From Phallusia mammillata (Eukaryota): a stretch of DNA of 64,000 nt. This document shows positions 22,992 to 56,110 of the stretch, piece by piece; the first letter of the stretch is position 1; every line of letters starts with the position of its first letter. The notes under the pieces are model-generated. The model worked only from the letters and a program-made list of their open reading frames with translations. It searched no databases and was not told the DNA's origin. A program made the translations under genes and the position numbers. The stretch spans positions 16,926,001-16,990,000 of the forward strand of contig OZ281497.1 of assembly GCA_965637545.1 (NCBI GenBank). Reading direction: 5' to 3'.

Positions 22992-25900
22992 ATGGAACTC
23001 GAAAATTCTTCACCAACCAGCGACGTCCCTGTTGATGACCAGCTATCAGGAAACAAAAGCAGGAACAAGAGTTTCAAGGTGGTAGTAAATAACTAAGTTT
23101 ATTTTGTTATACGATCGGCACTTGCGCAATGAACACCGGCCGATGTCAAATCGTGGTGAAATGATGTATCGGTGTGGAATGAACAAAATAGGAGCTAAAA
23201 CGACCCAAATTTAGCGAAACTCAAAAATAAGCTCGACTCGATATTTGAAGGGAACAGTTAGTTATAACCTAAACTCCATGGTTAATGACCGTGAATCACT
23301 GCATTAAGTGAGGTGCTATCGCACGTTTTGTGCAGGGTTCTTTTCTGGGCACGCTGGTTTGCGCGTTCGTTATGTCAATTAAAGTTTCTTTCGAAAATTT
23401 TTTATTTTTTTATTTTTTTTTTAGCTATGTTTTAGCTATTTATTAAAAAAAATCTTTCGAAATTTTGGATTGACATCGAAAGAGTCCGAAGATGAAATAT
23501 ATGTGATTTTATAAATACTTTAGATCAGGGGTCATCAAACTATTTTCACAGCGGGACTGATAATTTTAATAACCATTTGTCGCTGATGTTGTCGCTTATT
23601 CTGATGGTGCCGCTGTTAAATTGCAAAATTATGAAGAATATATAGGTGTCTCATCTACCAACCCTTGTTTCCTATTCTATCACAAGCAACCAAACAAGGC
23701 AATCGTTCACGCACAATTATTGTTATTTGCTCTTGTCTATGACGTAACAAACCGCTTTTGGATCATATCTAAATGCGTTGCAATCCTTTTAGACCAGATA
23801 AAAGTATTACTAGAATGCATTCTGTAGGTTTGTGCAATCTTTAAAGTATTGCGTTACAAAATGTTCCATACGTTTTAATACAGCAAATAATCCTTCGCGA
23901 GCCGGATAAAATGACGCCGATTGCCTAGTTTTGTGACCCCTGCTTAGATGAATTTTTGGCCTAAAACAACCGTACATAGAAAAACTATCGACATCCTATG
24001 ACTTCGTATGGCTCGCATGATTGTTCTCGGGCTCATGAGCAATATTACTTTGCATCAACAAATGTCGCAAACTATTGATTTATCGACGACACGTACATGA
24101 TACCGTGCGCGCGTGCAATCAGACGCAATATGAAGAATCGATGAAACATAATTCAAATGTAAAAACTATTAAGTGGGACCAAATCCGAATAGCAATACAA
24201 CCCGCCTGACCGGCTAACAACATTTAGTTTAACTTGTAACATCCACGAGTGATTTATTGATCCACTTTTACTACATATGCATTTGCGTCGGTGACGCGCA
24301 TTTATGGTTTTGTGGGGGATTTTTTCCAGTTTGATCAGATACGATTTTGCAAATTTGATATTCCTTACTCAAAAATTTGCTATAGTTGTTTATGTTTTGT
24401 GCTGTTTTTTTCCTTTTTTTACAAAAATTGCATTTAATCTCCAACAGGAACAAAAATATGTGTTGGAAATATGAAATTGACATTTCTCACAGTAATATCA
24501 GTAACAAACACAAAAAGCATGATTTTGTAACAAATTTAAATTTATTTTGATAGTTCGGTTTATTTTTTAAAACATTTGCTTTTAACAGCGGCTTGCGGAA
24601 ATGCGACGAAAGTCGGTTAACAATGCTGACTGCTTCATCACTTTGGCCGTCCTCTTCACGTTGTGTCCTGCAGTTTTTGTTGTTCTTGTTGTCGTACCGA
24701 TTAAGGTAAGTTGTATTTGTAAATCGCTTGTTTTGGTCGTTAATTTTTATTTTTTTCATTAGTTTTATTTTTTTAAGTAATGTATTTAATGCACAAAACG
24801 AATTGAAACAGAAAACCTAAAAATTGCAAAACAAACATTATGCATACGTTTAGCAGTTTCGCAGCCTAAACTCGGTTTGCTTTTATCAATTTTTATTATC
24901 CTAATGCGTTTCAGTGACCACAGAGCTTTTATCCTAACCCCGAAAAATTACGGCATTATTAGGTAGTAACATATATAACCACGTTGTACAATGTACACCA
25001 AACAAAATGTTTGAGACAACTGGTTAGTCAGGTATCCGGAGTTAAGAACTGGGGCTTTCTGTAGTGACATGACTCTGTATGGCAATAATTTTTGGCGAGG
25101 CAAATTATGACCCTCGAAGTCGAAGATACTTTGTAGGAAAATATAAACGGTGTTAAATTTGTGGTATTATTTTACGTGGAAGATTTTGTTCGTTTCCCCA
25201 TTGGTCCTAAACGCTTCGCAAAGTCTAAGTTTCGCAAAAAATTTTCGCGATACAATATTTTGCAAAAAACAAAAAATATTTTTTATATTATTATTATTTT
25301 TTTTTTTTTGCGACCCACTTTCATGCATTGTTATAGTATTAAAATTTATTTTTAATAAATTCTTACATTCTTAAACATTGGAGATAACGTTTCGCTTCAG
25401 TAGCAACTCTATCATCCGCATGACATCCAATTGTTGATAGACAGGGTACATATTTCGTTGTGTAAACTACAACCTCTCGCTCGGCCGATTTTCATAAAGT
25501 GCCGGCGTTGTTTATGGTTTTTGTATCCCCACATTCTTCAACAACGAGTGTTTGGGCTAGTGAAGCATTTTTCGAATTCTTAAAATTGTTAAGATCTTCA
25601 TAACTTACTTTTTCAATCAGATAAAAACTAAATCATAAGCCATGCGGATTTACCAGCAATACAAACGGTTTACCAATTTGATGTATTGAGCTTGTAATAA
25701 ACTCGCATAGCAAGTTTGTGTTTTCGTCTTTCAGTTTGCATAAGATTTTTTAACGCCCAAAGCCAAATCTCCAAGCTAATGATAACTTGTAGTTATACGC
25801 AAACATAGCACAAGGTTTATTTTACAATTAAGCACAAAACGCCCTTTTCAGTTTGCAGCCATACAAACGCAGACCAAATTTATCAGCGCATTTCTTATCG

Positions 25901-31844: not shown

Positions 31845-32791
31845 CAGGGGTCTCAAACTCAAACTGCGTTGGGGACCAAAAACAAACTTTTAAGTAAGTC
31901 GAGGGCCGCACTATCGATATCGAAGAAAAATATTGCAAGATTAAAAAGTAAAGTGTTTATTTATGCCATTAGCTACAATAAAAATCAATATTGTAATAAC
32001 AAAACAGCAATAGATGCACAGAGTAGCAAAGTGAAAGAGTCAACTGTGCTATTTTGCCTTGTGTGAAAACAATGGCCAACAATGACGCAACAATCGCAAT
32101 GGCTGATTCTAAAAATGGGCTAGTTCGATTATCCTGTAAAATATACCACTAATACAGTGGTTCCCAACCTTTTAGTAGTCACGGACCCCTTTTGTAAGTT
32201 TTATACGCCAGCTGATTCCCAACGTAATTTTCCGTGTCTCTCATATGTTTTTCGTTTCTTGCATTATATGTTAATAATACATTTTTGTGCGGCATTTTAA
32301 TCAGCCTTTACAGTCCTCAAAGCTCAATGAAGTTCTGCACTGTAGCAACAGAGAGATAAATTTTCTAGTGTACAAATGTTGAAACAAAGCACTATAAATT
32401 CCATTGTTCATGTGTGTTGTAATGTCACAATGGAGATAAAAATCACAAAAAAGTAGTTTTTCCAGACCCGAAAGTTTGATAAACAGTTTGCACTTGTATG
32501 CAGGATTGTAAAAACATTTCGAAAACTTACAAATATTTTACTGTTGGTTAATGGTACTAAAAATGTTTGGCTCCACGGACCCTCTGAATCCCTCTCACGT
32601 ACCCCTTGGGGGTCCGCGAACCCCAGGTTGGGAACCAGTAGGCCTACTGCACTAATAGAATGATTGTATCTTGTAAACTCTCATAAAGGGTATTCGGCCA
32701 GAATAAAACAGATTAAAAGTTACTTCGTGGGCCACACAAACACCCTTGGAGGGCCGCATGCGGCCCGCAGGCCGCGTGTTTGAGACCCCTG
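31845..32791. mobile_element. hAT (Charlie-like) MITE, host of a nested hAT MITE
   Basis: TIRs CAGGGGTCTCAAAC / GTTTGAGACCCCTG; 8-bp TSD ATTTAAAG at 31837-31844 and 32792-32799; GGGCCGCA subterminal motifs. Confidence 0.92.
32155..32649. mobile_element. hAT MITE nested inside the previous element
   Basis: Left TIR CAGTGGTTCCCAACC; right end GGTTGGGAACCA[gtaggccta]CTG; 8-bp TSD CACTAATA at 32147-32154 and 32650-32657. Confidence 0.88.
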
Positions 32792-35700: not shown

Positions 35701-38700
35701 TGCTGAGATCTTATAGGTGCTAATGTGATAAACAGCAACATGCAATGGTGTGTAACAACATATAACCAGGCAACTTTCCAAAAAAAAATGTGAATTGGAG
35801 GGAAGTTCTAACGCCAACTTCAAAATTCTATCAGGTTTTTAGAGTCAGTACGTTGTGTTTTTCTGTGTTGACTTACACACCCCTGTGAGAGTAACTTTAT
35901 CTTGTTTTGGGTAGAAGTACTTTTTTGCGGTAATAGCACTATTTGCCGACCTAAAAACGAATCTTTGCGCACTCACCACACAGGTTTTCAATCCTCCATT
36001 GATATTGTCTAGTAACTGTCGCGACGGTCCCGCAATCCTCCTAATCCAACTCCATTAACAAGCAAAGCACACTGATATCCGCCTACCTCACGTCGCAAAC
36101 GGCGCGTCGCTAAACTTGTTTGTTATCTTTGTCGTGTTTTGTTTGACACCCTTGGTTCCCCAAAGTCAGAGCTTGGGCCCATAACAGGACAGAAGGGCAA
36201 GGACCAGATACAAAGCTTTTGGCGGACGTTTGTCGAGTCCTACAACATATTGTCCGGCACTCGATACCATTGTTCGATCCCACAGGTTTCTCGGGCGCTC
36301 TCGTGAATCATCGCGCTGCTTGAGGTGACGACCCGCTGTGGGGATGTCTTTTATGCCTGTCAAGTCGCAGATCTCCGTCAAAGGTTCTGATTTAAAATTT
36401 AGTTGTCCCACAGTAACGACTGATTTTTCAGTTTTGTCCGCATTTTTGACAATTAGGAACTAAATTAAGTCATCAGGATTTGTGAAGATTATTTATTTGT
36501 GGTTCATTATGATGGCGGATGTCGTTTCTAGTTGCTAATTTTAAACGGTTAGTTTAGTCAATAGATGTTCTTGCTGATTGGTGTCCAAATTTTCTGACAA
36601 GGGTACTGCCCTATCCGACACATACGATCTGTCAGGCAGCCGTTAGTAAGTTAAGAAACAATAACGAAGTTTGGTTTTATGACTAGACAAACTACAATTT
36701 GTGTTGATTAAAATCGCACCATTACGTCATGTTGCAAAGTTTCCATCTCTCGTGAAGTGAACGCCAATGAAATGTAAATGCTAGTTTAAATAGCTGCTGG
36801 GCATAGTTAACCGTTAATGTAAAACAAAATCGATAGTGTGTGGCCAAACTAGAGGTGACAAGTGCAAACGTGTAGGTGATTGAAACACGTGCAAACGAGT
36901 ACTGTCAAGTTCAGACAAAGGTTTTGGCAATGCAAATTTATACAGTGCACTTGAATACTACAGTAATAGGTAAATTAATTTGCGATTTGCATCAGTATTT
37001 TGCCTCTTTGATATGGTTTCGCGATAACCGCCAATTTCGCAATGTATAACAGTATATAATTTCGCCGCAACAGTATATAACGAGTGATCATTTTACTTTA
37101 TTTGGGGTGTTGGGCAATATACACACATTTGAACGGGAAAGGATTGCGATTTATATCTATCGAATTGAAGCAAAGCTCTGTTTCCACATCATGCATAATT
37201 AATTCTTGTTTGAATGCATGCGCTGTACCACTGAGATCGACGGTTTTTAGTCTGCTAATGCGAGGAATGGGGTTCGTATGACCTCCAGAGCACGCCCTGA
37301 TATCCCAATTCCGACGTTCTTCGTCCTTTGGGAATTGGATTTCATTTGCACAGTGCTTTGACGTAATTTTATTGACAGTCTCGTAAGGTCTTATTCACCT
37401 GCCGGGAATGAGCTATTAATCTGCGATTGATTGTAGTTCATTTTAAAAAAAAAATTTTTGCAACGATCTGAGACTTTATATAGGTTAGGTCCATACTTAG
37501 ACAACATGGGTTCACCGATAACTCAGCATATGAATCGATAAATCTGCTTTTAAATTTGCATTTACAAAAAAACGAGTAATGGTACGGCTAAGTCCTCGAC
37601 AGAGAGTCTGTGACCACCGCCCCAAAACAGTCGATTACACCCCAGAAAATCCCGACTCCCATAGAAGACCTTCATTCCTTCACGTCGTTTGGCGATTTTA
37701 AAACAAGGTTGGGCGGGGGTGAGGTCGGTTTCCCTGGGTGCTATTTTTGCGCCAAATGAAAATATTTTCGTGCTATTTTCGCGCATCGCATCACGCCTGC
37801 GGTGAATAGAGCACTTTGTTAGGCGATTTGGGTCGTATAAAAGCCGGCAACCTGTCATAACAACGTGCCTATAAGCTTTATGCGTATTACGACTGAACGC
37901 TTTATTACCAGAGCAGCTTCACAATTTATCCGTTGCCAAAACTTTGGCTTGAGTGTGATGTAAAAATACAAAGTCCTAACAATCATTTGGGCGACTCCGA
38001 TTTAGTATCCTTACCACCGTTTTATGTGATAACTTGAGGCAACAGAATAATAACAGAATAACGAGATTTAATCCCACCACCAAGCTAGAGCGAGATGTAC
38101 TTAAGTTAACGGTTTAACCGCCAAAATATATTATTTGTTGTAGCGGTTAGAAATAATCGATTAATAAATCAATTCGAACCGCTGTATTGTGTATAAAACT
38201 CAAAACTTTTAGCCTATGCCGACCAGTAGAAGTCTCAAAGAGTTTTTAAGCATATCATGGTACATTGGCAATGAATTTCGCGCCGTTAACTCGCTTAAGC
38301 TGTATTGAAGTCCGGAGCGTTTAGGTGCCTAAATTGGATAAACTTAAAGCCAATTTCACATGAATAGCTTTTTAATGCGTGTCACCCAAGGTTTTGAAAT
38401 ATGCCTTTAAAGCATACCAACGAGACAAATTATCCATATGACGTGATGCTACTGAAAGGAATTTGACACCACGCAAATCATCAGTGTACGAACTCAATTT
38501 CACAAAACCTTTTACGGTTACGTTGCCACGAAAGGTGTTATCACATATTTGGATATCATATTTGTTTGTTGAACCTGAGCTTTCGGTTCAGAGTCGAACA
38601 AACTAGCAGTTTGGATTTCAAATGTTTGGCCAAGCGAAAACATCAACAACATTTTGTCATTGATCCAAGAAACCAGCACCTGGCAATAAAGTCCTGTGTA

Positions 38701-40659
38701 TGTCGCCCTCGTAAGAACCCACTATTATCGAAGTTGAATCCAATACCCGACAAGCCCCCTAATCCTCACTACATAGGGCGAGAACTTCAGTTGTGCGTAA
38801 AAGCCCCGAATCGTTTAGCTTCCGGGTCGAAGCTGCCATTCCCGTCGCGTTTTCGGCCTGTCGCACTTTCGGGATTGCCACCTGCAGACCTCGGCGAGTT
38901 AAGCCGAAAATTGTCGCCACACTGCTATTCGTTGACATTGTTTTCAAGCTTGTCGAGCATGAAACATAAGACTGAGTGTTTCAAAACTTTGCTACCACAG
39001 TTGTTTTTTTACTCTGGTGGGCGGATACCTTACAGACAACAAAATATCGAGTTTCGCACCACACTAGTGACCCTGTGGTAAAGGTTCCGTGCTTAAGGTA
39101 TGTTTACCCTGAACAGGTCAATTTTCAGGGAACATTGGTACATAGTGAAATGGTTTCTCTGTTGCTTCTTGGCTATTGCACAGAAAGTGGAACAAGTGTA
39201 AATTTTCGCCCCGTCCCATTACTAACATAATAGTGCATCATCGGTCGCATTTAAGGGCCGGCTGCCATTTCTTGACATCATCTCTTACGTAGTTAGCGAT
39301 AGAAGCGCTGATTAGGGCGCACATATGTAATATAGCGACAATGACGTTAGTATGGGTGCCGTGACCACATCGCCTTTCTTTGTGATGTGGGCAAAAAAGT
39401 TGAATAGTTTTGCCACGTTATCACCACAAATCGCCTATTAGACTCAGATAGCCAATAGCAAGTGTAGTCTGCGATCTTATGACGATGGTTAACGGTAATA
39501 TAGTCTGGAGCTGTGTGATTCCGTAATGTTTTCGTATTTATGCGAAATTTTCTTTAAACAACAAACTATCTATTTATGTAGACGTTTTGGCGGCTAAATC
39601 GACTGGATGTAAGTAACTTAATTGCCTAATCCTAGTCTACTTCGATGTTTGCGTACATGAATATTTTATTCTAGACATTGCATATTGTTTGATATTGCGG
39701 TTAGTAATTTTCAAAAATCATTTGTAGCTGGGAGTCAATACTCAAACCAGCGGTTGATGTTTGTGTAAAACATGTTATTTATTTTGGACCCAGTCGGTTT
39801 TAGTTGGGACTATATTAGATGGCCTATTACTGATAATGTATGCAGAAAGGAAGCTTGAATTTAAAAAGCAGGTACATTAAATACATTTTATTATATTAGT
39901 GACAAATCGAGGCAGTGAGTTTCAACAGGGCAAGGGCAAAATTTCTGACCGGTTGTGCTTCGTTGTCGCTGCCAGGCGGCTAGCGACAAGTCATGCAATA
40001 AAGGCGGGCGCAGGAGTGGGAGGAGCAAATTTCTCTCACTTCTCTCGCTCCGGAGAAGGGAAAAACTTATCTAGCCGTTGAAGTGCCCTCGGTTGTCGCG
40101 TACTGCACAGAAGCTTGCGCCGATTGCTGAAGGGAAGTTATTAAAAACGACAACTAGAAGGGCAAAAGATTGTTGATGCTTTCAATTATTAACTGCACGC
40201 AACTAACTTTGTTGCCTGCGAACAGGAACAGGCCTTGTGGTCTTTATCGTGCGATAAGGGGCGTCATGCGGCGGTTATTGTTGTTGTAAAACTCACTGGT
40301 GTTTGCTGCGCGCTAGCCGAGTTGTTATTGACCGAGCGTCGGTTTTGCTTTGAACAGTTTTGGTGATTCGACGGAAGAAATGTTTAATGATTGGAGTTAT
40401 GACAACCCGTTAAATAACAATCACTGTCGCATTGATTTCAATAGCAGAGGGCAGAGGTGAAGCTGCAGTTACGTATTATATAAGGCCTTCTTGAGCATGT
40501 GCCTAGTCTTGATAGGAAGTTCAGTCACGTAGTGAATTGGCGAGGTCCATGACCGGCCGGAAACTGTCAAGCTTGTTGACACGTAATGACATTCTCAGAA
40601 CTTTCAGTCAGAAGGAGTAAAGCTCCACTGTAGTGAACGATTACAGATGGGTCACAAAT

Positions 40660-43600
40660 ATGTTTGTGGTGGTCTGGCAATGCGCTTTAGTCAGCATGGT
40701 ACGGGCACGCGCGGTCATGTATGTTGAAACCTTGCTGTCATCGGCTGTCGAGACGTTCGAGCACTTATGCGCTGCCAAGCTAACCGCATTTATGGACCAA
40801 AACTACCAACTGCCATAAAGCGCAGTAGAAGTGGGATTAGGTTTTGTCTTGCAGTGTTAACATATGACCAAGCGCCCGTGTTAAACCAAAAACATCTGTC
40901 AAAACGCACTTGCGATTGTTGAAATCACTGCCATTGAGCCAAAAATTACCGCTCTTGCAACTTTACGTTGTAAGAACGGAATGCAGTCCTGCTTGCCCAT
41001 TATGCGGTAACAAGATAATTATGAAGAGCCAACCGATTTCGTGTGTGGCACATTAATTTACTACACTTCACAACCGCATTAATTTACGAATTAGTTGGTT
41101 ACCGGCAATGCGTCAGAGCTGTTTACATGTGGTTGTATTCACGCGAACCAAATGTCAAACGTGCCTTAGCAATTTATAAGCATTGATAGACCGACAAGAA
41201 CTTGACTTAGCTTTCGGCGAGGCTAGCGTTCAACACTGCTGAGGCGCTCGCCTTTACGCACGCTCTAAATTCATGTAACCTTGTTTACAGCAAAACGCTC
41301 GCTTACGAGCACTGTGTAAAGTGACATATTGCTTACTGTTGATATAAACTCACAGGTCATGGCCGACGATGGCATCACCACTGCACAGGAGTTTGTCAAA
41401 TTATTGGCGAACGCCCGTACCGCCTGTCAGAGGAATCTTGAAAATGGGGATATTCCAAAGGACAGTGATGGTGAGTGTCGTTTCCGATGATTGTCTGTTT
41501 TAATAGTGTTTTTGATCTGTGCATGGGCCGAGAATGAAGCTTCCTGGTGGTTACTGATGGGTTTCGAATAGAAAATTTGTTTTGTCCGAGGTCGGGCGTT
41601 TTGAAAGCGGAGAATGTCGGTTCATAGACGTATGGATTTGGTATAGGTTGTTGTTGTTGTAGTGTCTTTATTACAGTGCAAAAGGTCGTTTAAGAGCAGG
41701 GGTTGTGGCAAAATTACACAGACATGTTTTTCCATTTAACTTGTTATTTTTAAACAACAAAAAATTTGGTATTTTGCAAACATATATTTCGAAAAACATC
41801 GCAACAATTCACAACAACAAAATTTAATGATTATTAAATGATAAACGCTCCGATAACACTCTATGTAATTAAAAACCAACGTGTTTTTATGGTGCCAAGC
41901 CGAGTAACAAGCTCAACAACAAATGCAATTACTGGCAACATTAAGCCACATCAATAGCCGTAACATGACCTGCCCTGCAAAAAATTGCGTTTGTTGCTGC
42001 TGTGTTCGGCGTATGGCAGCGCCTTTGGCAATTGGGATTTTTCATGGTTCAGTGATGAAGGTGTAAAATATTTCACAACGGGCATACTCCCAGCAAAATC
42101 AACGCAACTTTCGTATATTGCCATTAAAAAGAAACTTTTAACCTATCAAAATAAAAAAATATCGACTTAAATTTAACTCCGAAATGCCGACGTTTTTTTT
42201 TAACAAGTTGTAGTTAAAGGGTAGCGAATTGGCAAAGCACAATATTTTCTAGCATTTGTCACGTATTATATCTAGAGCAAATAGGGAATCAGAAGCAACA
42301 CGTGCTCGCCAATCCCTTCCGTTCAAACATGCGGATCGGTGTGGCAGGGTTGGGAAGTACTCGAGACTCGCACGAAAACACTCGCCTTTGCTCTACGGGC
42401 CACAGATTGACTCGTAATCGGAGCGCCCGCGAAGCTTCACACTTAATGGGGGGTGACAGCTAGCATCCCCCAGACTAAAACCCCAGCGCGCCTCAACCCT
42501 CGTAGTTGTACCCACAAAGGCATGCGGATGGGTCCGGTTCCGATTATACAGATGTGTTTTCTTTTCTTTTCAAGCCAAAACTATGTTTTTTCTACACCAG
42601 TGGCAAAAATGTCGACCCAGTCAAATTGACATCTCAAGCACCTTGTTAAAATTTTTACCTTACCGAAATTCCTGCACATGTTTTGGTGAAAACATTTTTA
42701 AATTATGTGCATCTTGGTATATAAGTGTTTAAAACTTTGCATATTTATCCACACAGGAAACCCGTTGAAAGTCTACTGCCCTGGCGAGTGGGATACTTTG
42801 TCGTGTTGGCCGAGCAGTCCACCTGGAACCAGTGTGACCATCGCTTGCCCCGAGTATGTTGAAGACTTTGACCACTCCGGTAAGCAACTGAAATTTGCTT
42901 TATTACGCTTAAAACACAGAGAAAATTAGACATTATCACATTGCCAACGATATTTAAAAGCTTACTACCTTACATTACCCCTGTAGGAAGCGGCGTGAAA
43001 AGCACATTTTAGCAAGAGGATAGCACATTTTCGAAGAACAGGGCGTATTTCGCGCTTCGCTCTGTTAAAATACACAAATTGAATTTTTTTTAACATCCAG
43101 ATGTTCGACCTTACAAGAGCCTTTGATCCACACTAAGCGCTTTATGCCATCGATTTTACCCTTTGCCGTAATCGTGTCGGCAATTTAAATGCTATCAACA
43201 GGATTGCGTATAATATTAAGCTTCACCTGTTAACGAAAGTAACCCGTTACTTTGGTGTCATTAAAGTAATTTTCACTTTTTAACGGCAACTGAAACTTAA
43301 TGGTATAAATTTTGACGGAAGTCAACAAACAAAGTTTTTATTCGAAAACTGTGTATTGCAAAAAAATCTACGGTCTTAAAGTTATTCTGATTAACGTAAT
43401 TATGTGGAGAAAAGTACGTCTAACGACGTAACAATCGTAATGCGATACCTTGGCTTGTGCGTTTATGGGCCAAACTCCCAACGTCCAGCAACGTTTTTGC
43501 CGTAACACGAACAATCTGAACTATACTAGAAATAATTTTACCTCAAAAACAATATAAACTGCATTGGAAATGGTTGTGACATTTTATACAAAACAAAATT

Positions 43601-46600
43601 AAGAACTTGATTTTTGACTCACAGTACAACTCCACAAGACTTTCATTTGCAAACGCAAATGTAATTTAGCATTACAACTTAAAGCAAATTATATGATTCC
43701 CAAAATGACTCGCATTTTGCGTAACTAGGGGGAATCCAACTTTTGTTTTTGTGAAAGTGTGTTGGCAAGCAGCACTGACCAGCAGGCTAAAACGCTTGAG
43801 GTGTTACTTTTGTCACTCAGCCAACAACATCCCTATGCATTTTTCATGCGGTTAGCGTTAGAAGTGTGCAGTTCATAGTTTCCACGTGGTGCCAACAACG
43901 TATTACGTTGAAAATTAATTAGGTCGCGTGTCCTGCCACGTTAACTCATCATGTTTCGAAGAAATCCTTCAGTGTCCAAATGGGTAACAGTGACATGTTT
44001 AAAAAGGATAGAAAACACAGATCCGGAAATAATGAGGCGCGTTTCATTTTTAAACTTAGCTTTATCATTATACGATGTCGCGCTGTTCAGGAAAGATGAT
44101 TCACCCATAATTAGCCGTGCTGCAAGCAATAGGTTACTTGATTTTGCGCACTAAAAATATCCTCCAATCCACCATTCTGCAGGATAGCGGAATCAAAGCC
44201 ACGTTTATTTCGCTTATCATCTCCTAACATCGCTAAATCCCATTGATTCAGGGTTTGCTCGGCCTTCTGATTGTACGGCTCGCAATTCATCAACCAGACG
44301 TCACATGTCAAACTGCTGCGCGTCCTCTGAGTCAAAACGATATCCTACATTAAGAATTGATTGTGGCCTAATGCCCTTTATCCCAAAAACACGTTTGCCA
44401 AAAAAAAGAATGTTTGGATTAATAATTATTTTTACCTGGGCTGAAAAAAAACCTAATAACGCCGGATCAAATGATACAACCAGGCTTATAAAACAATACA
44501 GTTTTTTTTAAAAGCCATATGCTCTTGTAAATTTAAAATCGTGAGGTGCCCAAGGTCTATCTTAGTAGGTGGCCAATATGGAACAATAGTAAAAATCTCA
44601 CCAGTGATTAGCTTTGCGAAATAAATAATCAAAACACTGCGATAACTTACACCGAGGCGTTGATTGTATATAGAGGTAGTGACTAGATTTTGCAAGAAGG
44701 ACGGAAACTGGTACCGCAGCGAAGAGGCCAACAAGACGTGGATGGATTATTCGCGCTGTTACGGAAGCGGATTTCTCGCCTTCGAGGAGGTCGAGGACCT
44801 CATCAAGGCCGGCGGATATGTAAGCGAAACTCAGTGTATAAGCGGCAAGCTCGCAAAGTCGGAAAATTGTAAAAGGCTGCCACTCAACTTTTAAGCCAAA
44901 ACCAACTCGACATTGAGTAAAATAGATCAATCATTGAAGCGCACATGAAACGTTTGGCTACCTCTGACAATGACATAAAGTTGTGGCAGACTTTTTCACT
45001 GTTTTCGACTTTGGCAAGGCTTGGTCGCTTTTCACCGCAGAACACTGAACGTCTCGTAGTTACTACCAGCGCTGCCGCTGGACTTGTGTTGTGTCGGTGT
45101 GGTGGGTTTTCACGCGGTGTGTTGCCCTGCGCTCAACGTTAGTTGTAGAGGCCTGCGCACAACGTCATCAACTGCACCCACAGTATGGCTGTATCAAGCC
45201 TTCAACCCACACTCGTTGTTCATGCTTGCTCGATAGCTGAATGCCTTGATGTAGCACGGTCACATACGTCACATTGTTTACCAGAATGTCACATCACGTG
45301 ACAGAGAATTTCGGGCGCGTGGCGCGTGTTTTTGTGAAATATTACGATGTGAATCTTATGTTGTAGTGGCAGTAGTGGGTTGTTGAGAAAAAACTAACTA
45401 TGAGTTGTAGCGGCAGCAATGCGAAGGCCTGCTATTGTGCCTAACCTATGATTATGTGTTTATAAGCCACACTTTCACGTGGGCAATGTCAACCAATCCA
45501 AAAACCTCTCGTTTAGGTCAGTGTAAATCTATTTCCTATTGACTGAACCAACAGACCTATATTCCAGTACACATATTAAAAAAATCGTTAAACGGCCGCA
45601 AAAGGTTAAGTGGCTAAAACAAGGTTTGGACTCAATGGGTAAGTGGCGCTTTGTGCTTCAACACGATCTTATCCCCGCCACCCAATTGTGTAGGAAAGGC
45701 GCGACGACATTGCTGGCCGGATGGTAGGTGGGCGAAAGCCAGCGACCAAAATCAGACCTGGATCGATTACAGCGAATGCCACACCCTTAGCAGCGAGCAA
45801 GAAATGCAAAAGCTTATCCTGAGAAAAGTGAGTCGCCTTGCCCGCCCCTCCTTGCCCCGTTAACCCAGTGACGCGTTTTGCGCGTTACTTGGAAGACTTA
45901 ACCCATTAATTCATCGACTCGACTGCTCGCCCTAACTCCCTGCATGAAACAGACTTTCTGCATTTATTTCTCGCGCGTGTCGGAATTAGTGTTCTTTGGA
46001 AGTTCGCCCTATGTTTAGGGCTTTCTGTGATAACATTTGTGGAGTCACCACCTAAGCAACAATTTGCAATCACCATTTTACATTAAATTCCAGTTGCAGA
46101 TAATTTTGGTGCACAATCCTTAAGTTTAGAATGACAAAAATGCCAAAAACCCCAATGAAAAACAAACGGGTAAAGCGTTACTCGCTGCAAAGAGATTTGC
46201 GATCTGAAAAATTATACTAGTTGTCCCATCATACTTTTGTCATGCAATCCATTGTCTAACGTCCTTGCATGTGCATGTTGTGTAATCTATACTTTTACTA
46301 ACCTTAAATGCAAACTAATTCTCGGCCAATGGTGTCTATCACACTTAGATTTGCATGTTTTGTTTGAAATTGATACCATGTCGAGGAACCTGCTTTCTAA
46401 TCGGTTGCAGTGTTTGAGTGTAAATGTGTGCAGTAGGTTGACACAACATTTAGACGCATAGCTTATGCTATAACATACTGCACTCGAGATTCTAAACTGA
46501 ACCCAGTTTGAAACCACCATTTTAAAACACCAGTTCTCTTTATTTATAGCTGTGGTTTCCAAACCCAATAAAATGGTTCCAAAAGGTCCGTGAATGCACA

Positions 46601-49600
46601 AAAAGTATTGGATTTTTAAGTTTCTAAAAATAGGTAATTGTGTGAGAATTTACAAAGGAGTCCCACAAACAGTTACCATTGATTTAAAGCATGTCAAAAA
46701 TGCATGACACGTGGCTTAAAAGCTTTTCGTTTACTTAATGAACGTTTCCTGTGTCGACCTATGCTGTTTTAATCAGTGGCAGCTCCATTTATGACGTTGC
46801 TGTAAAGTGTACTCTGCGTTATGACGTAATACATGAAAATTTAACTAGAAGACCCATCGCAGCCCAACTATTTTTGTCACTTGCAGCCCGAAGAAAAGAA
46901 CATGATTCGGCTTTACACAGTCGGTTACTCCTTCTCGTTTGCATCCCTCGTCATCGCTATGATCATTCTCGGCTATTTCAAGTAAGAGCTTGAATTTATT
47001 TATGAATCTATGAATTTTTTATGTCTATCGTACAGCGCCTTAAATACGCAATTATCAAGTTGATAGAATCTATTTTAAAAGTCAGCGTAGGAAGTGTTTA
47101 ACGCACTTCGTAAAGGTTCTGTGAATTTAGGATGTTTAGTCTGGCTTCGGATTACAAAATACAAACCTCTACGCGGAAAACGCCTGGTTTGGTAAGATCT
47201 CCACAAACCCGCGTAGGTAAACCAACTATCCGCACCGATATAGGCTTCTTTAAATGTCACCCAAAGGCACACGAGTGGTAAAAGCCGTGTTTTACGGTCG
47301 CTAGTGTTTGATCAGGTTTCGACTGCAAAAACAACATGGCATTCACAAGTACACGCAACACAACCTTGATCACAACGTTGACATCACATTAGTAATCGAC
47401 TTTTATGACTAAAATAGTCAAAATGGGTTTCGAAAAACGGGTTTAGTTTGTACAGGACATGATCAATTGAACTATAGTACCACCACGCAACCGGAATCTT
47501 TGAGGTTTTGAACGAGTCTGGACATTATCATGCTTTCGTGTACAGTCTGGCCCAACATGCCATGCCACAACGCCGTGAGAATGCGTTCTTTTGGTTGTTT
47601 AACTGTTTAGATTACAGAGGAAAAGTTGCAGTTTTTAAAACATTTTTAACTGCTAATGAAAAACAGAATCTTGACACACAATTTCCGCTTGCCGACTAAG
47701 TAGAGCCCGCGTTACTTCATCACCCATAAAACCTCGAACCAATTTTTTTTATAGCGCAGTAAAGTCTCTTTAAACCCTTAAAGGCCACTAAAGTTTTCCC
47801 GCTTGTGTAATTAAGCATCCACAGGGTTGTGAACTGAACTTTATGGGTCTGGTTTAGGTAGTTTACTCTATGTTTCGAATGCGAAACGACAATGTAGGTG
47901 TTTCACGTGCAACGAAATTGCCGCTACAAGTTCAAACTTGTAACGGCCACAAACAAGGATTTAATTAGCACAAGGTTATTCTGGTGTTATCACACGGTTG
48001 GCACAAAATGCTGGTCACAACCCCCAGGGCCGTGTTATGTTGGCCAATCAGCGATGGTCTTGTGTGAATCGTTGTAACTGCCCGCACACAAACATGTAAT
48101 GGTCCGAGCCTGTACGCCCGCAGACCCCCGTAATTGTTACTTTTCGACCCAAGGCGAAATATTTGCACCGTAGCGGCTTGTTGTTTATCATTGTTATCGG
48201 CTTATGGGAGGTATCGTATAATTATAACGATTTTACAGATAATAGCACAGATTATTATTGTTTCTCTGGATATAAACAGCAGTTGCCGGTAGAGAATAGA
48301 ATATCGAAATTTGTAAGCATAAGATGCACAAATTTTCCAAAAATAACTGATTTACAATATTTTATGGTCGCTGCTATTGACATTATCGAGCAACACCACT
48401 TAAGATGGATTATATCCCAACATCAGTACAGTCGACACATTAACTCCGCTCCATTTATTCATGTAGGCGTCTTCATTGCACAAGAAACTACATCCACATG
48501 CACCTTTTCGCCTCGTTCATACTTCGTGCGCTCTTCATCTTTGTTAAAGATCAAGTTCTTTTCCACGGTGCCGGTATACTGGACGTTGCATCAAGCGGAC
48601 CAGATATCGAAGGACTCGACAAATACATTACCAGGGCCGTGGATCAAGGAGCAACGTCGCTGGTGAGTCATGACTTTGTTTGACAAAAATCCTACTCTAG
48701 AGTACTTTTGCTCGACACTGGGGCTCATGGCCGGGCTCCTCTAAAATACGCAAGCTACGCAATCTACTTATAAAACGTATGCAACTTCTAAAAATGTTGA
48801 CAGTTAGGGCTTTTAGGGTCTGGGTGAGGGTTTATAATAAAAATAACACAATAATTATGGGTCCCCTTCCCTGAAGGGGACACATATTGTTTTTGTCTAT
48901 ATTTTTTTTTTCTTTTTTCTTTTTTTCTTTTTTTCTTTTTTTCTTTTTTTCTTTTTTTCTTTTTTTCTTTTTTCTTTTTTTCTTTCTAACGCAGATTTGT
49001 TCCCACGTTTTGGTCAAGAAAGAATGGTTCAAACTTTTTCAAATTTACACACATTACAGATATTGGTCTAAAGATGGTCCATGTGAATTTTGACCCCGTT
49101 TGATCCCTCGGTTCACCCACAGCCCCCCAAAACGTGAAATTTTTAGCGCGGATTTGTTCCCACGTTTTGGTCAAGAAAGAATGGTTCAAACTTTTTCAAA
49201 TTTACACACATAATAGGTATTGGTCTAAAGATGGTCCATGTGAATTTTGACCCCGTTTGATCCCTCGGTTCACCCACAGCACCCCAAAACGTGAAATTTT
49301 TAGCGCGGCTATTGTTCCCACGTTTTGGTCAAGAAAGAATGGTTCAAACTTTTTCAATTTTACACACATTACAGATATTGGTCTAAAGATGGTCCATGTG
49401 AATTTTAACCCCGTATGACCCAGAGATTCACCCACAGGCCCCCGAAACGTAAATGTGTCTAACGCTCGTTTGGTCAAGAAAGACACTGTAGGCAGAAGTA
49501 CCAAGAGAGTAACTCACTGGTTTACGATAGCGGGAGGGCTCAGCTTGACGTCGGACAGACGTTTTACGAGACATCGTTTCAGTGATTAGAAATCAGCTGT

Positions 49601-52600
49601 TTTGCACAGCAATGCTATGTCGTTTTATTAAGTTATCACTCACATTTTTAGTTTTGGCGAAGGTTTTACACCTATGACGTGATTTAAGCCTAATAACCGT
49701 GCTTCGGTTTTGTATATGTCAAGAAAAACTTTGTTAATAAAAGTTAAGATGAAAAAATTAACTTGACTTTTTTGCCAAATAAATGTTTTTTTAAATGCTC
49801 GCTGTCAGGTTGGCCGCCGCATGATCACGGGTTACTTAAGGTCAACTAGTCGGTATTACAAACACAGCTCAGAACTTTCTTCATAACGTAGCGTTTTTTT
49901 AACAATCAATTTAGGAGTAAATACTCAAGGCATGTATAAATTAGGCTTAACAGTATTGTTGAACACGAATGACGGCGTGCTATTGAAAACGGTGTCAAAA
50001 GGTCAAACAGTCGTTTGGCGTGTGCACCCTGAGAGGTTACTACAGGTCAATGGTACTCGTTTTGCGAAACAAAGTTAAATGAAAAACAATTTGTTATGTA
50101 TACACTTTTTAATTTAAAGTGTCTGTAACACAACTGTTACAGCTTTCTAAAAAAAAATTGCCCGACCTTGGAGGACTATATCTGGGTCAAAGCAAGAGAT
50201 TAGATTTAAGTCTTTGTTACGTTTTTTTAATGTTTTTGTAATTACATGACAATAATAGTGCAAAAAGAATACGAACAATTTTTTTTATTGTTGGGTTAAT
50301 GCTTTCTAAAAATTTGTCCTTAAGAATGTAAAAATCACCGCAACATTTGTTTACCGTAAATCCGCACAAACATGCGTGTGGGGACCCATTAGTTTTTGTT
50401 TACAAAAACAATCATATGTGTAGATCAAATGATGTGTATAGTAAATTGGTAAATATCGTATAGAATATATAAAATGGAAGTATATCAGAAAGCCACTCTT
50501 CTAGTTTAGTTTTAGATGCCCAGTTTAGGCTTAATATTCATTATTCACATGTGTGTTGAGAGTGGTACTAAATACCGTATGGTGCCGCATGTTAACACTT
50601 GTAAGAAAATTAAGCCCAAAAGGTATCTGAGATTAAATTATATAGTTATTTTTGTTATAAACCCTCACCCAGACCCTAAAAGCCCTAACCGTCAACATCT
50701 TAGTTAGTTTTTTTTTCGCAAATTGCGTATAGATTGCGTAGAATGCGCAGATTGCGCAGATTGCGTAGATTGCGTATTTTAGAGTAGCCCCTCATGGCCT
50801 AATACCTAATGAAACACACCCGAAACGAAGCTTTTCCAAACAAAATGAGTACATGCTTTATCACGGAGGCTCTGAAATAAACGTTGCAAGACAACTTTCA
50901 AAGTCTACAAAATGGTTGCAAGACAACTTTCTCTTTTAGTGTCCTTGCCTGAAAGAAAGTCAAAACATGTCCCTTGAGCGTAAAATTCCGGTTAAAAACC
51001 TCTGCTGTAAACCCAAAATTAGAATACGATTTCTTGTGATGGTGGCAATGTATTGTGATAACCTGCCGAAGGTGGTTTAATCATGAACTATTTCTATTGC
51101 AGCTTACTTGCAAGATTGTGATCACGTTTTTTCACTACTTCATTGCAACCAATTATTACTGGATCTTAGTGGAAGCGCTTTACCTGCATAGTCTCATTTT
51201 TGTGGCGTTTTTTTCCGACAAAAAGTACCTCTGGCGATTTATTATAACCGGATGGGGTAAGTAATTTCATCTTTTGTATCATGTTCCTGGAATTTTTGCA
51301 GTGCAGTTAAGACCTCAACGATTTTTTGTGGTAATTCAAAGAGTTTTTGTTTAAGCCTGTTTGAACCAGTGACATCTTTGCTATTGTTATTATAAAAGTT
51401 TAATGTTGGCTGGTCCTTTTACGAACCACGTGGGTCTCAACACACAATAGGAGATTTGCTGACTGACGTCAGAACTGCTGGAGCGAAGATAACGCGCCTT
51501 GTTCAAACATTAATTATCGACCAATTCTCCCAGTTGCCGAGTTTTCTGAATAGCAAATCGGTCACATGGTTTGTTTAACAACTTCAAATTGCAAAAACTT
51601 ATTTGAAACCAATCCTTGTGAATAGTACTTTCTGCTTTTTTAAGTCATTTTATGCTTTTGCAGCAAATGTGTGCAGAGTTTTGGTTAAATTAACATTCCT
51701 ATATTGTCACCATTTTCGGCCACAAAGCAATCGCAAACTGTAAAAAAAATCCGCAAAACTTTCCACTTACTGGGGGTATCAGGTAAAACCCATGCACCGA
51801 GCGTCCCCAGCGACCTGCTTGCCACATCATAACGTGCACCAAAAAAACAAAGTATTTAGGCCGACAAAAAGGGCCTTTGTTTTTGGATAAGCTTTAGATG
51901 TTTTTGTACGTCTACACCTGAAGCCGCTTGACCCGAATGTTGAAGGCTAATCCCAGACGATATATGTTAACACCTGCATACGGGCGACCCAAGCGCCATG
52001 TAATTGTAGTTAAACCGGCAAAGTTGTGATTAAAGATTTATTTTTATTTTTGGTCTGCAGGTGTTCCAGTGCTGTTCGTTCTTCCCTGGGCCATAGTGAG
52101 AGCTGTACTGGACGGAGACTCGTAAGTTTTATCCCCGATTTTCCTTTCCAGTTTCCGCGGCATTTTGGCGATAATTTTCGGCCGCACAACCTGTAATTTG
52201 TTGATCTCTGTTGTGTTTTCCCTGGTTTCCTAATAACTAGATCTAAACGCGCATAGTCGTCCGTGCCAAAATCAGCCCTTATTGTGGTCGCATTACAATT
52301 TTACCTACGTCATCCGCTTATCCCTTGCAACACTTGCTGACGTAAACACTCTACCTTTGTGGACCAATGGCACATCACGTGTTTAACGTGCCAGTCGCTT
52401 GGAAAAGCAAAATTTAAACCCGGCTCGACCTCTATGTTGTTTACTCGCAGATGCTGGGATGTCTCCGTTCAAGAATACAAGTGGATTTTCAATGGTCCCA
52501 TTGTGGTCGCCAGCGTGGTAAGCTGATCCTAATGTGACGCCATTCGAAATCACGTGCTGGTCTAGCAATAGTCACGTGATCTTTGAAGTGCATGCAGTAG

Positions 52601-55600
52601 ACTGTAATGTTTTGTGTAAATGACCATGCCAATTAATGCATTCTTAAAAAATGGCTCGTGGGTGTCTAATTTTTGTTTGTTTAATGTGTCTTATTTTGTA
52701 GATTAACTTCTTGCTGTTTCTAAACATCATCCGTGTTCTATGGTATAAAATGAAAGAGCGTGGTATGGCTGGAAGGACAGACAACAGAAGACAATACAAG
52801 TGAGCTCAAAATATCACGATTGTTACAGTCTCAACTGATGGTTTTGATCCTACGTTTAAAGATCATACAAAACACTGCCCACAAATTCAAATTAGGTGTT
52901 TATTCTGCTACCATACATTAGTCTCTTTTGCAAATGCTACAAGACATTTTGTTTGACTTATGCAAGTGCTTGAATTCTGATCGTTTTACTCAGAAAACTT
53001 GCCAAGTCCACTCTGGTTCTCATCCCCATGTTCGGAGTTCACGTCATCGTTTTTATTGCCCTCCCTGACTCTGTGCGATCGGGTGCTATGTACTACGTCA
53101 GCATGTACTTCGACCTTTTCTTCAACTCTTTCCAGGTGAGTGATGACACAAGTGATGACGTCACGACTTTTCAAGCCGACACACTACAGTCGGTCGTTGC
53201 AGTGTTTTTTAAAGTGTTTTTATTCTAAATGCTTACATTAAAAGTTTTTTTCACGGGATTTGAACCAAGGAAGCTCGCCTAGGACGGTTTTAAAATGTCT
53301 GTTTGTGGATCAGGTTTCTGTCTACTCTAGATCTAGATGCTTGTAGTAAAAAAACGTAGAATTTGTACTCGGTGTTTACTGCCAAGTTTGCTTGGTTTGC
53401 TAAAGTTGAACCAAGTTCAAAGTCATTTGTCTTCAGGTTGTGTGGACGCGTTTTCGTGCCAATGAAACTACGCGTCCAACCACTAATTAGCCCCGAACTT
53501 GCTTTGCCGACGTAATCGATTTTCGGTTACAAACGGCCTATTACTCTGTGACATTATTTGCACTACTTACATTAGAACGTTTTGCCGTGACACAGGTGCT
53601 TGGAATATAACCATTAACTACATGTAAGGGAGGCGAAAGGTTGTGACGTTTTTTAGACATGTAACTTACGTCCCCAGGGCTCAGAAAAATATCACAACAG
53701 TACTTTCAAAAACTAACATTATTGTTTGTTGCAGGGTTTCTTCGTAGCGATAATCTATTGCTTCTGCAACGGAGAGGTAGGCCATTTTATTGATTCATTT
53801 ACAATAAGCATTTTTTTATTTAAATCGTACAGCCAAAGTAATAGTAATTTATCCATTCATTGCGGGAACTATTTGATTTAAAAAGTATCACATCAGGAGT
53901 ACCTTTAAGGTTCTTGCCCTGCACTAAAAAACATGCTGGTGGTATATAAAGCGCCTATACTTTTAACTTTGCTACTGTACAGGGCTACGTGCTGTTTGCC
54001 ACGGTTCCGTTTTGTCGGCGTCAGTAACACGGATACCAAACATGGTGTCCAAGGGTTACGTCTGCGAGCCCCTTTTTTAGCTAATTGTTTTCCCTCATCG
54101 GGTACTTGGCACGTAATCCTATTTTTTGCGGTGAAACAGGCATCATCGCCCGCACGAGATGTGCATTTTCTCAATGCTTTTGGAATTCGATCCGACAGGC
54201 TTAAACCATTGATAGAGTGCAATATCGAACAAAACAATGCATAAGCTTTCTCGAGTGGGATATTGATTGCGCATTAAGGGGTGCCGATAATCCGTTGATG
54301 ATTGGTTTACAAAATTGCTTATTGTCATGCACTACGGAATCGTATTTTCAATTTTAGTTTCTGCGTCTTGCATCCATCGAATTAAAATAAAAGCAAAATG
54401 ATGTGCTATTTATAGTATATGTACCTGCCTAATGGAACATAAAAAACACTTCAATGATGTTTTTGTCACAAGTTTCACAAGCAATAAAATCGTGTGTGCC
54501 TGAAGGGCGCTGGAACAGTTTATACAAATGGATCAGAAAGTTACCTAGCAACGAACAAAACCATAGGTACACATAGCCAACCATGGACTTAACTTGACAG
54601 CAAATTGATTAGGGCAGTCTTTTGTCCTGGATAAGCCACCACGTGTACTCCTCCGTTTCTATTAGTCGTTTAGATTGCGCAACACTTTAACATAAAACCC
54701 GAGCGTTAACACTTGTATGTCATTGTCAGGTTCAGGCAGAGTTCAAGAAGGCATGGGAACGCTTCAACCTCTCAGTTGAGATCCAGAAGGGGCGAAGAGA
54801 GCGAAGCAGGTCCTCGGTCACAATGTTAACAAGCTTTAACAGCACAGCATCCCAACAGGTCTGTACTGAGACAACTACTATATAGCATCTTAGATTTTGC
54901 TGTCTGAAAGTCCATATGTGTATGCGACTTATAGTTACCTGGAATACGCATTGCTTTGCAAACGGTATTGCATGGGAAGTCTGTACGATGTCCATTTAAC
55001 TGTGGCATTAAAGTCTTGCATTAAAAAATGCAAAAAAATATTTTCTAACACGGTCGTACAGAAGTGCCCATCTTCAACCTGTGAAAGCCAAAATGATGAC
55101 CATGTTAAAAACAATTCAAAATATTTTTATAGGCTCGACTTTCGATCGGTGGAGCAAGCAACGGCAAAGGTCATCGGGGAAATGGTTGCCTATTGACTCG
55201 TCCAATGACTTCAAACTGTGAAATGAGAGAGGTGCGTTTTTTTTTCTTGTATTCTATTATTGTTTTAATCTTTAATGCTTGTTTTCTTGTTAGCTAAGCG
55301 GACCTTGGCTTTGCTGTGTTGCCACTGTGTTGTTTTTATCGTGCTTACTTGTTTCTAGGTCACAATGGGTACACCCAGATGCATGGAAATGGAAACATCG
55401 TTTGCGGAAGATCAAAATTGCAACAATAACAATCGATGCGACGTATGTGATCTGTAATTGTGTATTTGTGTTGTGTTATCAAATTTGTCAAAACGACATA
55501 ACTACCGGCCTTGTCTTAATGTCTGGACAAAGTCTTGAAAATCAAGGACTCAATGGGAAAATCATTTCTTTCCCAGAACAATACTGAAGGTACATCGCTT

Positions 55601-56110
55601 ATGGCGACAAGACGCAACGGTCCTCCTCCCTTCATTCGAACGCAGAGCGGAGGATTTGCGTCGCGTGGCAACGATCTCATCCTCCCCATTGCGGAAGAGG
55701 ACGATAAAGCGGAGGAAGAGTTCGAACGCGCTGTTGAACGACAGGTGGAGTGTCCAGCCGGGAGCTTCAACGTCGAGATGTCCCAAGATGCGGAACAAGA
55801 GGAGCTCGATGAGTTAAATGACGTTATCGGACAAGAGGAAGGCGCCATCTCGTGGCGGAACCGCATGTCCCGGTCGAAACGCGCCGAGTCTGAAGATTCC
55901 GGTATTTCGTCAAACTTTTTCTCCAGTATTCGGCGTGGGTCGGGTGGAAAAACTGACGCCAGCCTCACAAACTCTGTGTACGGGTGCGACAGCGCCGCCA
56001 GTGGCAGTGACGGGGAAAGCTTGACTGATGGCAAGGTGGCGCTCTTGAATCCCACTGACATTGCCACGAGCGAGGGAAAGCCCCTAGTGAAGGGTGGCGA
56101 CGCTGTGTAA
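40660..56110 (+). CDS. PTHR: Parathyroid hormone receptor-like class B1 (secretin family) GPCR, ~703-707 aa
   Basis: Exons 40660-40698 (signal peptide; true start may lie further upstream), 41356-41470, 42757-42879, [44674-44819 or 45694-45827], 46887-46981, 48467-48662, 51103-51256, 52061-52121, 52451-52517, 52702-52799, 52994-53135, 53735-53776, 54730-54858, 55133-55231, 55359-55442, 55577-56110; phases consistent. PTH-receptor-like motifs [11 protein letters not shown] (cf. DADDVMTKEE), [101 protein letters not shown]. The two tail exons at 55133-55442 are the least certain. Confidence 0.94.
44674..44819 (+). CDS. PTH-receptor-like alternative ectodomain exon 4A
   Basis: tatatag acceptor, TAT/gtaagc donor, phase 1 in and phase 0 out; encodes (E)[48 protein letters not shown]. 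Confidence 0.88.
45694..45827 (+). CDS. PTH-receptor-like alternative ectodomain exon 4B
   Basis: ttgtgtag acceptor, AAA/gtgagt donor, phase 1 in and phase 0 out; encodes (G)[44 protein letters not shown]. Confidence 0.9.
48902..48986. repeat. (T6-7C)n polypyrimidine microsatellite
   Basis: Directly visible; explains the poly-Phe and poly-Lys ORFs in the ORF track. Confidence 0.97.
48991..49481. repeat. 157-bp tandem repeat, about 3 copies
   Basis: Units start at 48991, 49148 and 49305 (GC(A/G)GATTTGTTCCCACGTTTTGGTCAAGAAAGAATGG...); the third unit is more diverged. Confidence 0.95.

Follow-up and report, generated by a model that had tools for sequence, protein, structure and literature searches.

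In the fibroblast growth factor receptors FGFR1-3, the membrane-proximal half of the ligand-binding domain is encoded by tandem duplicated exons, IIIb and IIIc, of which one is used per mRNA, and the choice alters ligand specificity. The lengths of these exons are not multiples of three, so that double inclusion is out of frame. Tissue-specific regulators of the choice are known and the ligand switch has been demonstrated experimentally. Docking- and selector-site clusters are known from Dscam1, 14-3-3xi and MRP1, in which one of several tandem homologous exons is likewise used per mRNA. Among class B1 (secretin-like) G protein-coupled receptors (GPCRs), splicing alters the hormone-binding ectodomain in the N-terminal deletion variants of PAC1 and in the alpha, beta and gamma forms of CRHR2. 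Here, a pair of tandem homologous exons was analyzed in a parathyroid hormone (PTH) receptor-like gene of the ascidian Phallusia mammillata, located on the forward strand of a 64,000-nucleotide stretch of contig OZ281497.1 (assembly GCA_965637545.1, positions 16,926,001 to 16,990,000), which is called the window and whose own positions are used throughout. The two exons, 4A (44674..44819) and 4B (45694..45827), lie on the forward strand between a constitutive ectodomain exon and the exon encoding the first transmembrane segment (TM1). Taken together, the evidence makes it very probable that the pair is mutually exclusive in the mRNA, with the reading frame backing that exclusivity, and that it stems from one duplication in the tunicate lineage after which both copies were kept; the two ectodomain variants are predicted to differ in ligand response or coupling.

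The deposited protein P0153 (UniProt A0A6F9DQK2, 759 aa, ‘parathyroid hormone 2 receptor-like’, Phallusia mammillata) is the product of this gene, as its spliced alignment to the window contains zero mismatches over 17 coding exons (22992-56110), with exon 4B chosen. When P0153 was compared with PDB sequences by phmmer, PTH1R (461 bits) and PTH2R (439 bits) were far ahead of the next family, the secretin receptor (297 bits), and the Pfam domains HRM (PF02793) and then 7tm_2 (PF00002) are both precomputed on the protein. Together these matches clearly place the predicted receptor in the PTH-receptor family of class B1 GPCRs, the identity proposed by a first-pass annotation that a model had made from the sequence letters.

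The coding exon directly upstream of the pair (42757..42879, forward strand; sequence, RNA and P0153 alignment), called exon 3 in the naming exon 3-4A/4B-TM1, encodes Cys2-Cys4 with the motifs C-W-P, C-P-x-Y and D-F-D and ends in phase 1. The constitutive TM1 exon (46887..46981, forward strand, 95 nt; the same three lines of evidence) starts in phase 0. Both alternative exons are entered in phase 1 and left in phase 0; both have AG acceptors, and their donors are GTAAGC (4A) and GTGAGT (4B). Exon 4A (146 nt; sequence, RNA joints and orthologues) encodes Cys5, G-x-W, an N-K-T sequon, W-x-D-Y-S-R-C with Cys6 and a 20-aa stalk. Exon 4B (134 nt; sequence, RNA joints and the cDNA-derived, deposited P0153) opens with an ancestral-type G-x-A-x-R-x-C and encodes Cys5, an N-Q-T sequon, D-Y-S-E-C with Cys6 and a 16-aa stalk. 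The two peptides are 34% identical overall and 43% identical over the core, with R-x-C, G-x-W, the N-x-T sequon and W-x-D-Y-x-x-C in common. A third copy was not found in the 64-kb window by tblastn, which recovered just 4A and 4B (mutual E ~1e-7). In comparison with PTH1R, the swapped segment extends from G-H-A-Y-R-R-C to the start of TM1 and holds Cys5, the conserved Trp, the N-R-T sequon, Y167, Cys6 and the stalk. Joining 4A and 4B in one mRNA brings a TGA into frame shortly before 4B ends, and leaving out both shifts TM1 out of frame. The coordinates, peptides, phases and splice sites of the first-pass annotation were all present in the sequence, its account of the frame was reproduced on recomputation, and Cys5, Cys6 and the stalk, which it had assigned to this segment, were all found there together with the sequon.

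RNA-type runs of this species were found in several studies, and exon use was assessed from the assembled contigs of four of them (X1, X2, X4 and X5), from two studies, placed on positions 41300-47100. In every mature mRNA seen, the upstream ectodomain exon was followed by one of 4A and 4B, which was in turn joined to the TM1 exon. The 4A joints, 42879>44674 and 44819>46887, were present in X1, X2 and X5, and the 4B joints, 42879>45694 and 45827>46887, were present in all four runs; these are the four junctions that had been predicted from the sequence. In the RNA, 4A is entered at the 44674 acceptor and not at the AG that lies in frame at 44679. The X5 assembly includes a 206-nt contig made up of 29 nt of exon 3, the whole of 4A and 30 nt of the TM1 exon, while a 194-nt contig has the same exon 3 and TM1 flanks with 4B in place of 4A. 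These contigs form the alternative paths of one assembly bubble, and each alternative exon is therefore joined on both sides to the same constitutive exons in one molecule. The k-mer depths of 4A and 4B were ~48 and 43 in X1, 9.1 and 17.9 in X2, and 9.9 and 10.9 in X5; in X4, a single unbranched contig of 1434 nt contained 4B only. Neither a 4A>4B joint nor an exon 3>TM1 skip joint was listed among the contigs of the four runs, which drop rare forms.

Contigs from X1 and X2 also span the introns around 4A and 4B, colinear with the genome (42851-46654), at a depth of 13-27 in X1. Depth over the 4A-4B interval in these intronic contigs is approximately the sum of the depths over the two outer introns. 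No contig of X1 or X2 covers the intron before these (41494-42657), although holes in such coverage prove nothing. The intronic coverage around the pair could be a sign that the alternative region is spliced slowly.

The same arrangement was found in three further ascidians, each represented by a RefSeq isoform pair whose members differ in this segment alone: P0273 (X1, with 4A) and P0272 (X2, with 4B) in Ciona intestinalis, P0152 (X2, with 4A) and P0278 (X1, with 4B) in Clavelina lepadiformis, and P0282 (X1, with 4A) and P0284 (X2, with 4B) in Styela clava. When other tunicates were searched for additional isoforms of the 4A type, only Ciona and Styela were found. In the genomes of all four species the order is exon 3-4A-4B-TM1, with GT-AG splice sites. 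Exon 4A, exon 4B and the intron between them measure 146, 134 and 874 nt in Phallusia, 146, 137 and 92 nt in Ciona, 125, 137 and 1242 nt in Clavelina, and 149, 134 and 3965 nt in Styela. The lengths of all eight alternative exons equal 2 modulo 3, and in each species inclusion of both results in a stop within 4B and omission of both in a frameshift. Identity between species is 33-57% for the alternative exons as compared to 55-72% for exon 3, 59-84% for the TM1 exon and 77-84% for the transmembrane (TM) core. Both alternative exons thus evolve faster than their neighbors, yet they keep every structural residue. Judged by their sequences, both copies are intact in all four ascidians and appear to be maintained by selection across species.

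A maximum-likelihood tree of the exon peptides was used to assess the origin of the pair. The four 4A exons formed one clade with a long stem (support 86/87, recovered in 92% of bootstrap trees). The 4B exons branched without resolution at the base of the tunicates, and a single 4B clade was not rejected (approximately unbiased test, p-AU 0.50). Three tunicate-like sequences, P0155, P0164 and P0007, were left out of the dating of the duplication. In amphioxus there is one exon, and a second copy was not found at E<0.05 in two assemblies; the duplication would therefore be specific to tunicates. The simplest history suggested by these sequences is that the exon was duplicated in tandem once, in tunicates, later than their split from amphioxus but earlier than the divergence of the four sampled ascidians and, with them, of the ascidian orders. 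The 4B exons start with G-x-A-x-R-x-C and carry an acidic or Ser residue before Cys6, as in the PTH receptors of amphioxus and vertebrates, and a 4B profile ranked PTH2R above PTH1R, CLR and CTR, in that order. The 4A exons start with E or A and have Arg or Gly before Cys6. By these signatures, 4B is the copy with the ancestral PTH-receptor character and the upstream 4A is the derived copy.

Ciona has a second PTH-receptor gene (P0269, locus L006), a recent duplicate with 92-98% nucleotide identity to the first gene (locus L001), introns included. Its 4B exon is identical to that of the first gene at 137 of 137 nt. A 4A copy was searched for in this second gene and is absent: the 527-bp segment that holds 4A in the first gene (L001:1315-1841) is missing at L006:2831-2834, with the break between two copies of GACGTCATAA. 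The sequence of the second gene is that of a 4B-only paralogue.

Both Ciona loci are also rich in the perfectly palindromic octamer TGACGTCA, the consensus of the cAMP response element (CRE), mostly in the form RTGACGTCAY. There are 34 copies in 5.3 kb and 24 in 6.2 kb, compared to 0.19 expected (Ciona L001:1-4564 and L006:600-4800). At least one copy of TGACGTCA is present in every intron around exon 3, 4A, 4B and TM1, often 10-30 nt from a splice site, and none lies within the coding matches checked (the first five coding exons, L001 only). No copy of the octamer lies at the end of L001 that belongs to the neighboring gene, and the loci of Phallusia, Clavelina, Styela and amphioxus show no enrichment. 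An explanation for the enrichment in Ciona was looked for and none was found.

The consequences of the swap for the receptor were examined in sequence alignments and structural models. The N-terminal ectodomain, the seven-transmembrane (7TM) core and the tail are identical between the 4A and 4B receptors, and the isoforms differ in 45-49 residues. These cover the Cys5 beta-hairpin, the conserved Trp and the N-glycosylation sequon, followed by the Cys6-containing end of the ectodomain and the stalk to TM1. All eight alternative exons of the four species encode Cys5 and Cys6. In 37-sequence alignments headed by a 4B and by a 4A isoform, the columns of the ectodomain cysteines show little or no variation (Cys1 is present in at least 90% of rows), and each isoform would accordingly carry six conserved ectodomain cysteines, forming three predicted disulfides. 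AlphaFold models of the ectodomain with TM1 reached a mean pLDDT (predicted local distance difference test) of 79.9 for Phallusia 4B and 79.6 for Ciona 4A, with values of 85-92 in the ectodomain core, and both matched the PTH1R, CLR and CTR ectodomains with a TM-score of ~0.8 on the target. Since the two models are equal in confidence and both match known ectodomains, both exons are predicted to complete the canonical fold. Past Cys6, the modelled 4B helix starts 3 residues on; the 4A model has a coil of ~9 residues and then a short helix.

In PTH1R, the Y167A substitution strongly cuts the potency of PTH and PTHrP, and the contacts made by D137 and the N-terminal helix are outside the swapped segment (bioRxiv 10.1101/2022.10.09.511452). 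The equivalent of Y167 is kept in both exons, and the swap would therefore leave the invariant contact residues as they are and alter the stalk, the surface of the hairpin and a charge beside Cys6. Such changes could affect ligand selectivity, affinity or the coupling between ectodomain and TM domain. Two ectodomain variants on one signalling core would then be expected to differ in their affinity or selectivity for peptide ligands, in ectodomain-to-TM coupling, or in both. In the first-pass annotation the gene was read as encoding two receptors with identical 7TM and tail, which the RNA and the alignments bear out, but with different ligand pockets and possibly two ligands, a part that remains conjectural.

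Several means of enforcing exclusion were considered. Steric hindrance was rejected as the enforcing mechanism because of the lengths of the 4A-4B introns, which fits the earlier view that it was unlikely. Incompatibility of U2- and U12-type sites was also rejected, all donors being GTAAG- or GTGAG-like and all acceptors AG. The acceptors of the pair are weak, with poor pyrimidine tracts: the acceptor of 4B is T-A-G in all four species, and that of 4A is T-A-G in Phallusia and Styela and C-A-G in Ciona and Clavelina. A scan for inverted repeats over 42880-46886, covering the three introns, yielded only short AT-rich arms (15-22 nt, 71-88%), with none shared by both exons that could represent docking and selector pairing. 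The frame class is the sole feature conserved in all four species, and it is therefore the reading frame, together with nonsense-mediated decay (NMD), that we infer to remove the wrong combinations. Messages with both exons or with neither would encode truncated proteins and be targets of NMD. Frame and NMD are thus the only enforcement seen to be available from the sequence, and they would presumably be combined with trans-acting splicing factors choosing between 4A and 4B at the two weak, pyrimidine-poor acceptors. Of the two enforcers named in the first-pass annotation, NMD or intronic RNA pairing, the former is available; no conserved pairing was found for the latter.

An imperfect hairpin of ~230 nt (44824..45057, forward strand) begins 5 nt past the 4A donor in Phallusia, with a minimum free energy of -70 kcal/mol and a z of -3.4. 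The window has no second copy of it, and it may represent a foldback element. A counterpart after 4A was not found in Clavelina or Styela, where the equivalent regions are unstructured. The hairpin is probably lineage-specific and outside the conserved mechanism.

Four other explanations have to be weighed against these data. That one exon is a dead or unused duplicate, or part of another transcript, could be suspected from the sole deposited Phallusia protein, P0153, which has 4B alone, and from run X4, where only 4B was seen. However, in three runs 4A is spliced between the exon 3 and TM1 exon that also flank 4B, at a depth near that of 4B, and the frame, splice sites, cysteines and sequon of both exons are intact in four ascidians from three orders, so this explanation has almost no probability left. 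Disuse of one exon, or its loss or decay in relatives, was what the first-pass annotation had named as evidence against a switch; the RNA joints show both exons in use, and the pair is intact in all four ascidians. A different origin for 4A, in which a calcitonin-type receptor gene supplied its homologous exon by capture or conversion, was hinted at by single-sequence matches. Phallusia 4A alone matched CLR (29 bits, 7e-6) and CTR (22 bits) above PTH1R and PTH2R (15-16 bits), while PTH2R and PTH1R rank first for 4B. This origin was not upheld by the four-species 4A profile, in which CTR (30.8 bits), CLR (30.5 bits) and PTH2R (30.3 bits) are equal. In addition, 4A nests among the tunicate PTH-receptor exons, albeit in a tree that lacks calcitonin-receptor sequences, and it matches 4B in position, phase and length, which is the signature of a tandem duplication. 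A calcitonin-receptor origin is accordingly regarded as improbable. Competing intronic RNA pairing, of the docking and selector kind known from Dscam or 14-3-3xi, could in principle be the main enforcer in place of frame, NMD and splicing factors. The introns are long enough for such elements, a strong hairpin directly follows the 4A donor in Phallusia, and in Ciona self-complementary copies of TGACGTCA are present in every flanking intron. The inverted repeats of Phallusia are nevertheless short, AT-rich and never common to both exons, the hairpin is missing from Clavelina and Styela, and Phallusia shows no enrichment of the Ciona octamer, so that nothing is conserved. RNA pairing as the main enforcer is therefore considered unlikely, if less remote than a calcitonin-receptor origin.

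The strongest rival, to which we would give a little under an even chance, accepts the switch as real but holds that hormone choice is the same in both isoforms. The segment would then tune affinity, stalk geometry, accessory-protein binding, glycosylation or trafficking, or be nearly neutral. This would agree with the identity of Cys5, Cys6, G-x-W and W-x-D-Y between 4A and 4B, with the concentration of the largest differences in the stalk (the early helix of the 4B model against the coil and short helix of 4A), and with the fact that most PTH contacts described for PTH1R map to the N-terminal helix and the surroundings of D137, both encoded here by constitutive exons. Retention of both exons through the ascidian radiation and their faster evolution (33-57% compared to 55-84% identity) argue against neutrality, but do not discriminate ligand choice from the other functions. 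Different ligand selectivity of the isoforms is nonetheless plausible from their sequences. In its furthest form, this proposal makes the 4B form an ancestral PTH-type receptor and the 4A form a derived ectodomain, equal in its scores to calcitonin-type and PTH receptors, for a different endogenous peptide, giving two pharmacologically distinct receptors by exon swap where vertebrates duplicated PTH1R, PTH2R and PTH3R, with the 4B-only duplicate of Ciona as the transition caught in progress. This extended version is put forward tentatively, as somewhat less likely than not to hold in full. PTH-like peptides in tunicates are predicted only (PMC4354418).

A mutually exclusive pair whose products may differ in function remains the preferred reading, and several points weigh against it. 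The exon tree has 44 columns and long branches. The RNA label of the runs was guessed, the tissues and stages of the samples are masked, the depths are k-mer depths, and rare forms are dropped by contig assembly, such that the contigs do not reveal whether exon choice is regulated or whether both or neither exon is used at a low level. The stalk, where the isoforms differ most, was modelled with low confidence (pLDDT 51-57), and for this reason the AlphaFold models are uninformative about ligand contacts. The Y167 equivalent and the invariant structural residues are the same in 4A and 4B, and D137 is in a constitutive exon.

The remaining exons of the gene, all on the forward strand, were placed by the P0153 alignment, each mRNA having 17 coding exons with one of 4A and 4B. 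Coding exon 1 (22992..23081, exact spliced alignment) carries the start codon and an N-terminal leader. Coding exon 2 (24589..24705) encodes a hydrophobic signal or anchor segment and is followed by an intron of 16.6 kb; the loose end of an RNA contig at 41354 runs on into the 3’ end of this exon. The third coding exon by count (41356..41470) encodes the N-terminal helix of the ectodomain and Cys1, and its joint 41470>42757 was present in all four RNA runs. Downstream of TM1 are the exon for TM2 and extracellular loop 1 (48467..48662), into which RNA contigs run on from 46981, and the TM3 exon (51103..51256). The nine last coding exons (52061-52121, 52451-52517, 52702-52799, 52994-53135, 53735-53776, 54730-54858, 55133-55231, 55359-55442 and 55577-56110) encode TM4-TM7, helix 8 and a long tail, stop included. 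The receptor leader of ~45 residues is followed by the hydrophobic segment, ahead of the M-A-D-D-G start of the ectodomain (exons 22992-24705; intron 24706-41355). Clavelina and the second Ciona gene share this leader. Several RefSeq models, P0273 and P0282 among them, begin at an M-A-D-D-G-type methionine, and the signal or anchor may be absent from such models.

Two other features of the window were recorded. In the TM2-TM3 intron, 48850-49420 contains a T/C-rich simple repeat followed by 2-3 degenerate tandem copies of a unit of ~150-200 nt, which was noticed as repeated peptides of open frames in the open reading frame listing. At 63650-64000, an open frame that runs off the end of the window resembles the start of what we take to be a pyridoxamine-5’-phosphate-oxidase-like gene.

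Class B1 receptors recognize hormones via the ectodomain, and the natural swap of a whole structural third with an identical signalling core is rare, is convenient for experiments and amounts to a ready-made chimera experiment. For tunicate endocrinology, a concrete question follows as to which peptide or peptides activate which isoform. The locus is also a clean case of exon duplication in place of gene duplication, in the sister group of vertebrates, and the 4B-only paralogue of Ciona is a possible snapshot of an alternative exon resolving into separate genes. It is important to note that the gene models and cDNA resources for Phallusia list the 4B form only and thus lack one half of the receptors encoded at this locus. 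Full-text literature searches on mutually exclusive exons in PTH receptors or class B ectodomains, and on isoforms of Ciona GPCRs or PTH receptors, yielded no description. Papers on PTH-receptor evolution report one receptor gene in amphioxus and two in Ciona and mention no splice variants (PMC3483286; PMC4354418). The first-pass annotation knew of no switch at this position; this holds for the papers found, but automatic RefSeq annotation already lists the Ciona, Styela and Clavelina pairs.

Comparison with these and other systems helps to define the pair. The closest entries are the RefSeq X1/X2 pairs named ‘parathyroid hormone 2 receptor-like’ (Ciona intestinalis XP_018671172 / XP_002121266, Styela clava XP_039274255 / XP_039274256, Clavelina lepadiformis XP_076813071 / XP_076813072). 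They represent the same switch, with orthologous genes and exon pair and the same order, phase and frame class, but they are automatic annotations only, and Phallusia has the 4B form alone deposited. As compared to FGFR1-3 IIIb/IIIc, tandem homologous exons again swap part of a receptor’s ligand-binding domain and double inclusion is again out of frame. The domain here, however, is a GPCR ectodomain rather than the immunoglobulin domain of a receptor tyrosine kinase, and the ligand switch at 4A/4B is putative. The variants of PAC1 and CRHR2 are cassette deletions or alternative first exons, whereas 4A/4B is a swap of homologous duplicated exons that preserves the full fold. Unlike in Dscam1, 14-3-3xi and MRP1, conserved complementary intronic elements were not found around 4A and 4B. 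The vertebrate receptors PTH1R, PTH2R and PTH3R belong to the same family and likewise represent diversity of hormone recognition derived from one ancestral receptor, and exon 4B shares with PTH1R, PTH2R and amphioxus the signature of G-x-A-x-R-x-C with an acidic residue before Cys6. The vertebrate paralogues arose by whole-gene duplication and differ everywhere, whereas in ascidians one exon varies and the 7TM and tail are identical; the 4A/4B pair would be the single-gene counterpart of that gene split. The pair is thus a real, conserved and transcript-verified instance of a known mechanism, that of tandem-duplicated mutually exclusive exons, at an unusual position.

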